Shown here piece by piece: positions 25,801-29,564 of a DNA stretch of 64,000 bases. The translations under genes and the position numbers were made by a program. Under the pieces are notes generated by a model. The model was not told the DNA's origin. It ran no database searches and worked only from the letters and a program-made list of their open reading frames with translations. Position 1 is the stretch's first letter. Each line of letters starts with the position of its first letter. The stretch is from Antechinus flavipes (lineage: Eukaryota): positions 75,950,001 to 76,014,000 of the forward strand of contig NC_067399.1 in the NCBI RefSeq assembly GCF_016432865.1, in the 5' to 3' direction.

Positions 25801-27320
25801 GGTATGAATTGCATTAGGAGACTGTGCATCATTGCCAGAAAATTGGGGGTGTTTGCAGATAACAAGTTAATAAGAAATAGATAATAGTGTGTATAAATAG
25901 GAATTCAGCAGTATCACTAAGATGATAACAAGGTTCAATAAGAAAGAGGTGTTGAGCATTTATATCACTTCTAAGTGTAGACCAAATCAGGTTAAAAAGT
26001 AATTGGGAGATATTTAACAAAATAAATAAAAATACCATAAAACAGAGTGAACCTTACATTTAAAAGTAAATCAAAATGTAGCCTATAGGAAGCCTATGTA
26101 AATTAGACCTTCCCCTTCCAGTTGAATTTGACCCTCTTACTCTAGGATAAGTTATGTACCTGCCCTAATAGAATGTATAAATTAGTATCTACTGGTTTTG
26201 TCAGATGGAAAGGCTAAAAAGAAGAAATTTAAATTAAGATGACAATTTTTGTTCCCTTTTTTGTGCTGGAACTGTAATGGAAGAAATGGAAGATGGAAGG
26301 AAAAACCAACTTCTTTTTTAAAACCTACATATTTTAAGAAATATATTTATTTAATGATTTCATAAAACCATAAATGTCAGAGAAGCATTATGTCTATTGA
26401 ATGGATGGCTAACTTTAAAACCATGAAAACATGAGTATAAATCTCACCCCTAATACATTTGTGTAATCCTAGATGAGTCACCACCTCTCAGAATTCTAAA
26501 ATTGTTTTGGAAAAGGGCCCAACTTGTGTTAGTAGAGGGTGTTTCCTAACCTCAGAGCTTTCAAGACCAAGGAAATCATGTCAGATCCCTAGTTCTATAA
26601 AATGTCAAATCTGGAAAGAATATGAGGAGATCATCTAGTCCTTTCTATTCACTTTACAAAGGAGGAAATAAATAGCCAGGCAAGGAATTTACTCAAGATT
26701 AAGTATAGGGTACTAAATATTTATCAAATCAATCACTGAGGAAAAAATATCCACATATCATAGTTTTAAGTGTAATCTGCCTTATTAATATCTTTTCAAT
26801 CACTTTATGACTAATTGACAAAACAACAAATCAGGCCTTGATTTATTGCCACTGCCAATTTCTGTGGTGTAAATCCTCACACTGAAAATTCAATAAGCAG
26901 TTCTCATCAGCCAGTTTGAGCTACCTTCAACATATATCACCATCCCAAGATCATAAAATGAACAAATATTGAATTAAAAAAACAAATCTCCTCTCTGAAA
27001 ACATAATCAGAGCCACAGAGGTCATGTAACTGCTGTTAACTCTGAAAATACCAGAGCTCTCATAAATTATCACAACCACAGTTGTCTGAAAAAAATATAA
27101 AGGAGATCACTGAAATCACAATTAACTCTAAGAAATACAATAAAAATGTAACAAAAAAATCAAAGAGCTAGCCACATGAGGATGAAAGCTTTCTTTATAT
27201 CACTAGAGGAGGGGAATTAGACACACATGTCTGGGAGGAGACTTCTCATTGCTGAGGACAAACCTTGACACCTATAGCAGAGGCTACGCAGTAACCTGGA
27301 ATGGTGACAATGAGGGGTAA

Positions 27321-27393
27321 TGTTGGAATCTTTACAAACTGCTAACTCATTAGAGTTGATGTTTTGGGCCAGAACCTGAAACAAGGTACTAAG
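27321..27393 (+). mobile_element. Left LTR U3 stub (73 bp)
   Basis: Contains tgttttgggccagaacctgaaacaaggtactaag, matching the U3 start of the LTRs at 13578/45142/46808; the rest of this LTR is deleted at an AG microhomology. Confidence 0.85.
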
Positions 27394-27479
27394 GAAAGTC
27401 CCAGATCCTCTTATCCAAGACCCTTGAAGAGAGGCCAGTAGGCAGTTGAGAAGAATTTGGAGATAAGTGTTAGAATCTC

Positions 27480-28185
27480 TTAGAGGGCAAATAGTAGGAG
27501 GGGAAATACGATGAGGGGGAGTTTCTGGGGAACAGCGCGGTTTGCATAGAGCAGCTGCATTGGGATTGCCTTGGGCAGGGTCAAACCACATCTGAATGTA
27601 GCGCCCACTGCCCAGTCTCTCCTTGGTGGCCTTGTAAGAGTTGTTCCAGATCTTCTCACAGAACTCAGCTGGGGTTGGGAAATAGTGAGGGAAAGGGCGA
27701 CAGAGGGCCAGGGCAGAACAATCATTCTTACCTGGACTCCAGGCAGAATCTTTGTTCCAGGCAGATTTGCAGGTAAAAGAGGTACGGCAGTCTTCCCACC
27801 ATTCTTTACAATCTTCCCAGCAAAGAGGCACATTCAGGACACGCTCCTTCCTCCAACTTGACTTCACCTTCTGGATCCAGGGTCCCGGGTTTGGGGAACA
27901 CTCATAGAGGCAGGCATCTTGGATAAATTGCTTCTTACAGCTGGGGGTCACCACACCACAATGTCCAAAGTTGAAAATGTATAGAGGAGACATGTCCATG
28001 TGAATTCCCCAGCTTGTGTTCGCAGTGCAGCAGGCATTATCCTTCCAGGGAATACACTGTTCATGGAGCTCATTTTCAGGTCCTGGTTCCTTCTTGTGGT
28101 GTTTAGCATCCATACAAATATTGAGCAGCTCCCTTTCAGTCTGGACCACGGTTGCAGCCAGCAGCCCTAGCCACCACCATTCTAT
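27480..28185 (-). pseudogene. IZUMO1R-like: Processed pseudogene of folate-receptor-family gene, most similar to JUNO (IZUMO1R/FOLR4); whole CDS
   Basis: Translation [13 protein letters not shown]...[16 protein letters not shown]...SPLY...HCG...ECSPN...FDPAQGNPN. No introns at the three conserved FOLR junctions (EQ|CIP, IQK|VKS, SPG|KND). Likely start is ATA at 28183-28185; one Cys to Tyr change; an 8-bp deletion before the GPI signal. Family certain, orthology inferred. Confidence 0.85.
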
Positions 28186-28244
28186 AACTTTGCGTAAAAG
28201 AAAAGAAAGATGTTGATCTTATAGAAGAGGCTGTCTGCATAGAT

Positions 28245-28688
28245 TGAGAAGACTGCTGTACCTCTTTTACCTGCAAATCTGAAGACTGCCATATCTCTTT
28301 TACCTGCAAATCTGCCTGGAACAAAGATTCTGCCTGGAGCCCAGGTAAGAACGATTGTTCTGCCCTGGCCCTCTGTCGCCCTTTCCCTCACTATTTTCCA
28401 ACCCCAGCTGAGCTCTGTGAGAAGATCTGGAACAACTCTTACAAGGCCACCAAGGAGACAGGGCAGTGAGCGCTGCATTCAGATGTGGTTTGACCCTGCC
28501 CAAGGCAATCCCAATGCAGCTGTAGCCCAGCTCTATGCAAACCGCGCTGTTCCCCAGAAACTCCCCCTCATCGTATTTCCCCTCCTACTATTTGCCCTCT
28601 AAGAGATTCTAACACTTATCTCCAAACTCTTCTCAACTGCCTACTGGCCTCTCTTCAAGGGTCTTGGACAAGAGGATCTGGGACTTTC
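28245..28688 (+). pseudogene. IZUMO1R-like: Inverted second copy of the 3' half of the same cDNA (WEDC...to stop at 28602, plus ~85-bp 3'UTR)
   Basis: Reverse complement of 27394-27798 with ~10 substitutions, a 2-bp deletion and a 33-bp tandem duplication; retains RCIQMW and the [30 protein letters not shown]-type tail. Confidence 0.9.
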
Positions 28689-29224
28689 CTCCCTCCAAAT
28701 GTCTCCAAATCCAAAGGTTTGTCTTTCAGCCTCCAGCCAGCCAGTTGGAAAATGGAATGAATCTCTCTTGCCTCTGAGAGAGGGCTTCTGGCTCTCAATC
28801 TCCAATATAGCCTGGTTAGCTTTTCTTAGAGGCCTCTCTCTCTCCTTGGTTCTAAGAGCTCTCGCAGCTTTGTCCTTTGCTTCTGCCTCTGCTTTCTTCA
28901 ACCTCCAGAGCCAGCACCAAGTTTAAGTTGTAATGAATCTTTCTTGCCTCCGTCTGTTTCTCATATATGAGAGAGAGGAATTGTGGGATATGAGAGAGAG
29001 AGAGAGATTATGGGTTTCTTCCCATAGTGCTCTCTGGCCCTAAGAGCTTCAAGGAAGGTGTGAATTCACAAAGTTTACTTTGTGAAACTCCCATACTTGT
29101 GAACTCCAATGAGTAAAGTTGTGAACACAAGCATTGTATCAATTAGTTCTACTTAGTACCTTGTTTCAGGTTCTGGCCCAAAACATCCACTCTAAAGAGT
29201 TAGCAGTTTGTAAAGATTCCAACA
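28689..29224 (-). mobile_element. Right LTR (U3-R portion) pointing into the cDNA hairpin
   Basis: Homologous to neighbouring LTRs (gagctcttagaaccaaggagagagagaggcctctaagaaaagctaa); no AATAAA/ATTAAA seen on its sense strand; no U5 end. Confidence 0.8.
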
Positions 29225-29564
29225 GGGTAACAGTAACAATGAGACAAGTTTAGCTCCTGGCACAGTTACATGCCCAGAACATGCTTACTGCAGGTGTTTG
29301 TCCAAGCTCAAGGAATACCTGAGGCTGCCATGTAACAATTCTGGGATTCTCTTACATAAAAATTCATCAAGAAGAGGAACATAAAGATTGCTGTTATGCA
29401 AAGTTCAGAGCACAATTCGCTTGTTAGAACCTAGGTTGGGAAAATAGTAAAAAGAAAGGGATGGTCTCAGGCTGGAAATCTTGACATTTCCCAAGTCCTA
29501 TTCACATTCCACTTCATTGAGTAATTTTGTGAGTAATTCAGAAAATATTGTTATTAAATGCACT

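Follow-up and report, generated by a model that had tools for sequence, protein, structure and literature searches.

How can a copy of a host messenger RNA come to lie in a chromosome between two inverted copies of one and the same retroviral end? This question is raised by an element in Antechinus flavipes, found in positions 75,950,001 to 76,014,000 of contig NC_067399.1 (assembly GCF_016432865.1); this whole stretch of 64,000 nucleotides, read on the forward strand, is called the window here. The element occupies window 27321-29224 (1904 bp) and is an inverted duplication with TG...CA termini, in which a processed copy of the gene JUNO, also known as IZUMO1R, is joined to long terminal repeat (LTR) sequence of an endogenous retrovirus (ERV). 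Both termini consist of the same 73-nt U3-proximal sequence. The insert probably arose by one integrase-mediated insertion of an aberrant reverse-transcription product, namely a strand that snapped back on itself and was then unfolded through priming at the U3 edge.

The entire 1904-bp block was inserted as a single unit with a 6-bp target-site duplication (TSD), and this occurred only in the Antechinus lineage. The element begins with the bases TGTTGGAATC and ends with GATTCCAACA, and the order at its junctions is ATGAGGGGTAA / TGTTGGAATC ... GATTCCAACA / GGGTAACAG. The duplicated GGGTAA sits in the context ATGAGGGGTAACAG, and the target is not A/T-rich. A TSD of 6 bp is typical of alpha-, beta- and deltaretroviral integrases (PMC4422553). 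Neither a poly(A) tract nor a long TSD was seen in the element or at its edges.

The empty orthologous sites were reached through orthologues of the neighbouring olfactory-receptor gene at window 33044-34075, the protein of which is 97% identical in Sarcophilus harrisii and 94% identical in Sminthopsis crassicaudata. In the Sarcophilus locus L005, positions 4582-6059 align with window 25838-27320 and positions 6054-8049 with window 29225-31223, and a second assembly of the same species (L006) has the same empty site. In the Sminthopsis locus L004, positions 5859-6019 align with window 27142-27320 and positions 6014-8776 with window 29225-32038, and the element is again absent. At these sites, the alignments of the left and right flanks overlap by 6 bases, which are one GGGTAA. 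Since the nearer and the farther relative both have an empty site with one GGGTAA, the whole block entered on the Antechinus branch as one unit, duplicating exactly 6 bp. An initial annotation of this DNA had described the inverted arrangement, the TG...CA ends with GGGTAA on either side and the lack of both poly(A) and an L1-type TSD, and had predicted an empty site with a single GGGTAA; the arrangement is confirmed in the sequence, none of the L1-type features is present, and the empty site was found in both other genera.

The divergence of the flanks gives a scale for the age of the insertion. Kimura two-parameter (K2P) distances between Antechinus and Sarcophilus are 0.060-0.071 in the flanks, and those between Antechinus and Sminthopsis are 0.10-0.11. 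The two arms of the element differ from each other by K2P 0.028, which is approximately 0.4 of the Antechinus-Sarcophilus distance. This relation fits an insertion after the split of the Antechinus lineage from Sarcophilus, with arms that would have been identical at that time.

The host part of the insert can be assigned by its protein and DNA matches. On the minus strand, window 27394-28259 encodes a folate-receptor domain (Pfam PF03024, Folate_rec, E 5e-56) with no in-frame stop inside the domain. The closest proteins are dasyurid JUNO, at 89% identity in Sminthopsis and 84% in Sarcophilus, and marsupial folate receptor alpha-like proteins reach about 60-63%. Among solved structures, all of which are placental, FOLR1 marginally outscores JUNO as a match to the captured copy. 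At the DNA level, the captured exons are 92-95% identical to the Sminthopsis JUNO gene. On these identities, the captured sequence is marsupial JUNO rather than FOLR1-like.

Five blocks of the Sminthopsis gene (L001 9982-10048, 12015-12154, 13062-13258, 14387-14529 and 14729-15082) lie contiguously at window 28259-27394. GT/AG dinucleotides are present at the block edges in Sminthopsis, and the four introns between the blocks, of about 0.2-2 kb, are gone from the window copy; judged against that gene, the insert holds a fully spliced, intronless JUNO cDNA. The first block, L001 9982-10048, is an upstream leader exon located 2 kb from the ATG exon in Sminthopsis, and the leader in the retrocopy stops exactly at the Sminthopsis GT donor. 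A JUNO leader from the 5' untranslated region (5'UTR) had been predicted for this segment, and the prediction is upheld by this exon boundary.

At the other end of the cDNA, homology to the 3' untranslated region (3'UTR) in the last Sminthopsis exon continues in the right arm to 28695, that is, about 95 nt beyond the stop codon. Beyond the matching point, the Sminthopsis gene goes on with sequence unrelated to the window. In the left arm, JUNO ends 5 nt earlier, at 27394, and directly abuts nt 73 of the LTR. The earlier reading of the sequence beside the left stub as LTR is thereby contradicted, as JUNO 3'UTR homology reaches 27394 and the left LTR is only a 73-nt stub. Because the retained 95 nt of the 3'UTR hold no polyadenylation hexamer and no A tract follows them, the cDNA starts inside the JUNO 3'UTR. 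The 4 nt at the LTR/JUNO junction were also considered as a poly(A) remnant, which was rejected since the retained 3'UTR has no polyadenylation signal and the Sminthopsis gene continues at this point.

As read in the assembled sequence, the captured JUNO gene is no longer intact. The full-length copy has not kept the initiation codon and has lost its C-terminal hydrophobic tail through one frameshifting deletion; the partial inverted copy likewise carries one frameshifting deletion. A separate observation concerns the JUNO model of Sarcophilus harrisii (GCA_048593225.1), which is flagged LOW QUALITY and extends over 144 kb for a 274-aa product, suggesting a mis-joined first exon.

The inverted repeats of the element form an outer and an inner pair. 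The outer pair, 27321-27393 and 29152-29224, is 73 nt long and 97% identical (repeat search and self-BLAST), and the inner pair, 27392-27795 and 28281-28690, consists of three ungapped blocks of 96-99% identity; the centre between the repeats is single-copy. The partial JUNO copy (28281-28695) is the inverted repeat of 27392-27795. The arms were compared by ungapped blocks, as a global alignment was misled around the large length difference. There are mismatches at 13 of the 480 paired nt (2.7%), ten of them transitions, and each arm has one small private deletion. The description of the locus as a JUNO-like cDNA between two inverted copies of the same LTR end, proposed in the initial annotation, holds with five spliced exons and 73-nt arms of 97% identity.

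The arms differ strongly in their LTR part, which is 73 nt long on the left and about 525 nt on the right. The total difference in arm length is about 468 nt and includes 5 nt of JUNO 3'UTR. Taken together, the substitutions, the private deletions and this length difference exclude a read-level fold-back artefact. As the right arm has JUNO bases that are missing from the left, the present left arm was not the template for the right one; by this comparison, it must have lost length while the duplication formed or later. One edge of the length difference is 5 nt from the LTR/JUNO junction, and a position almost on the junction is not well explained by a random later deletion. A later loss of 463 bp from the left LTR had been proposed; the shortening itself stands, but it amounts to about 468 nt, 5 nt of JUNO included, and its edge ill fits such a deletion.

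Directly at the fold-back point lies a 33-nt tandem duplication, in agreement with the 33-bp stutter noted previously. The segment 28245-28262 matches both the leader in antisense (15/18 against Sminthopsis) and exon 4 in sense (14/15 against the left arm), and the microhomology at the central junction, common to 5'UTR antisense and exon-4 sense, amounts to 4 to about 15 nt.

The retroviral part of the element was compared with a heavily deleted provirus remnant elsewhere in the window, which carries LTRs of a related family. Its minus-strand integrase-core open reading frame (ORF), a site resembling a primer-binding site (PBS), which may be of the lysine type, and a purine tract fix the polarity of its LTRs and uphold the orientation assigned to this provirus earlier. 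From this polarity it follows that the element opens on the left with LTR sequence in sense and closes on the right with it in antisense, so that both outer ends are U3-proximal. The claim that both ends are the U3 start of the provirus's own LTR family holds for the polarity and is limited for the family, because the comparator is only partly related and its U3 start aligns at nt 40 of the element. Left LTR nt 40-73 are homologous to this U3 start, and the outer 39 nt of the element have no counterpart in the comparator LTRs or in the loci L001-L006. The right-hand 529 nt align with the comparator LTRs in two colinear blocks, one of about 41 nt at 93% and one of 45-51 nt at 88-91%, and also match a Sminthopsis LTR at L001 18243-18580.

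The LTR/JUNO junction is located at 28696-28699 on the right, and the left junction is a 2-nt overlap. The right LTR has TATA-like boxes, no canonical AATAAA and, within it, a repeat of about 176 nt; the 65 nt at its end align with the interior of the related LTRs. The missing AATAAA and this internal alignment make it probable that the right LTR was cut within R. A complete right LTR (CA, then TT and the first bases of a PBS, with the arms as plus-strand strong-stop DNA) is conceivable; it was set aside, as the last 65 nt align internally and the sequence ahead of the junction lacks a polyadenylation hexamer. The element shows no trace of a U5 end, a PBS, internal viral sequence or a viral gene. 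Further copies of the element or of its LTR subfamily are absent from the 64-kb window and from about 130 kb of related loci (L001-L006, BLAST), where only the partly related family occurs. A 75-aa ORF inside the LTR, searched against 1.84 billion protein representatives, gave one weak, irrelevant match, and when metagenome contigs were scanned for exact 20-mers, four matches of 20-23 nt (L007-L010) came up, with no similarity beyond them. Scans for tRNAs and against Rfam gave no match. The coordinates of all features are presented in Table 1.

Table 1. Features of the captured JUNO element and of the provirus remnant used as comparator, in window positions.
Feature	Position	Strand	Remarks
Left TSD copy, GGGTAA	27315-27320	none	Single GGGTAA at the empty sites in Sarcophilus and Sminthopsis
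Left LTR end, 73 nt, sense	27321-27393	plus	Begins TG; 97% identical to the reverse complement of 29152-29224
Full-length processed JUNO/IZUMO1R copy	27394-28259	minus	Leader exon, four coding exons and about 90 nt of 3'UTR
Tandem duplication of 33 nt	28248-28313	plus	Two copies 91% identical; directly at the fold-back point
Second, partial JUNO copy, sense	28281-28695	plus	Starts inside the fourth exon, includes the stop codon and extends about 95 nt into the 3'UTR
Right LTR copy, about 525 nt and up to 4 junction nt	28696-29224	minus	Ends CA at 29224
Right TSD copy, GGGTAA	29225-29230	none	Single GGGTAA at the empty orthologous sites
Comparator, outside the element: heavily deleted provirus remnant, related LTR family	44741-46808	minus	LTRs 44741-45142 and 46406-46808
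Comparator purine (A/G) tract	45143-45158	minus	Adjoins one LTR
Comparator integrase-core fragment	within 46190-46393	minus	Pfam rve, E 8e-12
Comparator PBS-like site	46385-46402	minus	Adjoins the other LTR

Several observations were made on the comparator and on other LTRs of this kind. The two comparator LTRs are about 403 nt each and 90-95% identical, the integrase-core fragment follows the PBS-like site almost directly, and tandem repeats of 52-66 nt occur within the remnant. Its flanking 6-mers, AATAAG and GATAGA, differ from each other, which points to a decayed TSD or to LTRs from different insertions. Another LTR of the same related family lies at window 13600-14010 and is preceded by a partial copy of the first approximately 100 nt of the LTR, in a tandem or nested arrangement. 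The Sminthopsis LTR at L001 18243-18580 lies downstream of the JUNO gene, at about 3 kb from the stop codon, shares the orientation of the gene, and has a block in common with the LTR of the element that is missing from the window's own ERV LTRs.

The polarity of the arms is the key to the proposed origin. The full-length JUNO copy runs antisense to the adjoining left LTR end, and in each arm LTR sense is followed by JUNO antisense on the same strand. LTR sense that continues as JUNO antisense suggests that JUNO mRNA, from inside its 3'UTR to its leader, served as template for the extension of an LTR strand of plus polarity with its 5' end at the U3 start. Such an extension, already proposed in the initial annotation, agrees with the arm polarity; the individual steps of reverse transcription, like the timing of the left-arm loss and the origin in the oocyte, are inferred. 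The process would begin in a class-II-like ERV particle with plus-strand LTR DNA that has its 5' end at the U3 start. After about 525 nt, this strand would have left its normal template for a co-packaged JUNO mRNA, entering within the 3'UTR and continuing up to the 5' end of the mRNA or close to it. The 3' end of the strand, complementary over 4 to about 15 nt to its own exon-4 part, may then have snapped back and been extended by self-copying to the 5' end, which would create the second, inverted U3 end. JUNO is the oocyte receptor for sperm, which fits a female germ-line origin of the insert.

The exact 6-bp TSD and the intact TG and CA on the two sides require a two-ended duplex, and this means that either the hairpin was unfolded or two duplexes each gave one U3 end. 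Under the snap-back model, the hairpin would be opened out to a linear duplex, for instance through a new priming event at the U3 edge accompanied by strand displacement, and integrase would then join the two U3 ends to the chromosome 6 bp apart. The reduction of one LTR copy to 73 nt would date from second-strand synthesis or from the time after insertion. A polymerase that stalled at the JUNO-LTR boundary would account for a loss that starts 5 nt from the junction.

Several points weigh against this model. A snapped-back strand has one open end, and the two-ended duplex needs an extra, undocumented step. The 33-nt tandem duplication at the fold-back point is left unexplained. No further member of the element's LTR subfamily turned up by which its length, its 5' terminus and the place of the JUNO junction within U3-R-U5 could be fixed. 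At the LTR/JUNO junction, the 4 nt at 28696-28699 are assigned to neither side. Moreover, the inverted structure rests on one Antechinus flavipes assembly, and an LTR in the 3'UTR of the parental Antechinus JUNO gene remains conceivable.

The unfolding step is avoided if two molecules were integrated together, an explanation that we regard as unlikely without being far-fetched. Here, a chimeric LTR-JUNO strand would, as second strands were repeatedly primed and displaced, have given rise to two duplexes, one with the whole cDNA and one ending in exon 4, each providing one U3 end; an intasome with one U3 end per duplex would insert them, and the host would join the distal ends by microhomology-mediated end joining. 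The evidence from the integrase ends and the TSD applies equally to this course of events, the microhomology of 4 to about 15 nt at the centre lies beside the 33-nt tandem duplication, and end joining can leave short templated duplications such as this repeat. However, two products of one rare chimeric strand would be required in one complex, and a secondary loss would still be needed because the two LTR/JUNO junctions differ, by 5 nt in their position in JUNO and by their LTR length, 73 nt at one and about 525 nt at the other. No direct evidence separates this explanation from the snap-back model. A different possibility is that the inversion arose at the DNA level, by template switching or break repair, after the insertion of an LTR-flanked chimeric retrocopy or of a solo LTR that later received the cDNA. 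Inverted duplications of this type do arise, and the divergence and deletions of the arms show that the element changed after insertion. Nevertheless, an inverted U3 end would have had to replace the U5 end and to stop exactly at the base beside an intact 6-bp TSD, and no U5 end, PBS or internal viral sequence is left in the element, all of which makes a rearrangement of this kind very unlikely.

The junction between LTR and JUNO could also be genomic, if an LTR was already present in antisense in the 3'UTR of the parental Antechinus JUNO gene and the chimeric RNA was reverse-transcribed whole. The comparison drew on the Sminthopsis JUNO gene, downstream of which, at about 3 kb, a related LTR is located (L001 18243-18580). 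That LTR, however, has the opposite orientation and belongs to another subfamily, and the Sminthopsis gene has no LTR at the position of the junction. Additionally, a read-through transcript would not stop at the first base of an LTR with an integrase-type TSD, and no poly(A) is present; we therefore consider this origin highly improbable. Palindromes are a known artefact of long reads, and terminal inverted repeats with a TSD superficially resemble those of a DNA transposon, so an assembly artefact from a fold-back chimeric read and a cut-and-paste element with long terminal inverted repeats were weighed as well. An artefact of one read would not produce arms with 2.7% substitutions between them, private deletions and a length difference of about 468 nt; the content of spliced host cDNA and retroviral LTR sequence, with no other copy in the window or the related loci, speaks against a transposon, and either explanation is barely plausible.

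Among known systems, the locus can be compared with LTR-mediated retroposition, in which microsimilarity-dependent template switching joins host mRNA to LTR elements and which has been described in flies, mosquito, fish, chicken, mouse (8 cases) and human (3 cases) (Tan et al. 2016, PMC5131818). As in that process, an intronless host mRNA copy is joined directly to LTR sequence with no poly(A) and no L1 hallmarks, the mRNA is cut at an arbitrary internal point, and a few junction nt are assigned to neither side. In the described cases, however, host sequence replaces the interior of the element and the retroelement parts keep one orientation (PMC5131818). At this locus, in contrast, the cDNA is antisense to the LTR and duplicated in inverted form, both termini are the same U3 end, and there is no internal viral sequence, PBS or U5.

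The TG...CA termini, the 6-bp TSD verified at empty sites and the relation of the LTR to a provirus remnant resemble the integration of class II (betaretrovirus-like) ERVs. In this class, the two termini of a provirus or solo LTR are a U3 end and a U5 end, whereas the insert has two U3 termini and no viral gene. A processed mRNA copy with an internal inversion also recalls L1 processed pseudogenes formed by twin priming, but the insert has no poly(A), no TSD of 7-20 bp and no A/T-rich target, approximately 410 nt of the cDNA are duplicated and not merely inverted, and LTR sequence caps both ends. The locus thus lacks the architecture of LTR-mediated retroposition, departs from the U3/U5 rule and shows none of the marks by which an L1 product is recognised. 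It is best read as a new form of LTR-mediated retroposition.

Snap-back second-strand synthesis by reverse transcriptase is known from in vitro cDNA synthesis and from the self-priming of retroviral strong-stop DNA. The structure found here is similar, in that the end of a first strand folds on an internal complement and copies itself, which yields an inverted duplicate with a single-copy loop. Known snap-back products are dead-end hairpins, unlike the two-ended duplex that would have been integrated in the germ line in this case. No specific example of an integrated snap-back or of a two-U3 provirus was found in the literature searched. To our knowledge, LTR capture of host mRNAs is rare in mammals, and all described cases keep the normal two-ended LTR architecture. 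The record of this locus is unusually complete: the 6-bp TSD is intact, both cDNA junctions and the fold-back point are preserved, and two other genera have a precise empty site. The locus would document the germ-line integration of a reverse-transcription by-product with two identical (U3) ends and indicate that a single accident can yield an inverted-repeat gene copy. If the hairpin reading is true, it would provide natural evidence for the in vivo insertion of two-U3 DNA by integrase, and a one-step retroviral route from a host mRNA to an inverted-repeat (hairpin) gene.

The palindrome has also entered the gene annotation. The NCBI Gnomon model XP_051829515.1 ('folate receptor alpha-like', 302 aa) spans it on the minus strand at window 27060-28478; its first part is an ORF antisense to the JUNO copy of the right arm, its splicing removes the tandem duplication, and its last exon lies beyond the element. 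This model looks like a mis-annotated pseudogene palindrome. The 90% protein cluster to which it belongs contains no parental Antechinus JUNO protein.

Inverted-repeat pseudogene loci give rise to hairpin RNAs and endogenous small interfering RNAs in mouse oocytes. The Antechinus locus resembles them in its partial inverted duplication of a processed gene copy and in its predicted transcript, which would fold into a duplex of about 400 bp; it differs in its origin through LTR ends and integrase. For minus-strand RNA of 27394-28695, RNA folding predicts this duplex at -957 kcal/mol. The longer right LTR (about 525 nt) points along the minus strand, and the NCBI model on that strand starts inside the right arm. 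It is conceivable, although quite unlikely, that RNA driven by the right LTR, reading JUNO sense after about 410 nt of its own antisense, forms a hairpin and supplies small RNAs against the sperm-receptor mRNA in the Antechinus germ line. Any hairpin-RNA activity would be of biological interest, the captured gene being the oocyte receptor for sperm.

The element is located inside an olfactory-receptor gene cluster, near 76 Mb of its Antechinus flavipes chromosome (record CM028218.1, assembly GCA_016432865.2). The locus of the model XP_051829515.1 in that species matches window 17060-38478 at 100% identity on the opposite strand. Window 5400-12900, 22200-25800, 32000-43600 and 60200-61400 belong to this tandemly duplicated cluster, in which segments of 1-4 kb are 70-85% identical to one another and which is syntenic in Sminthopsis and Sarcophilus. 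At least three olfactory-receptor genes of one 90% protein cluster are present in the window.

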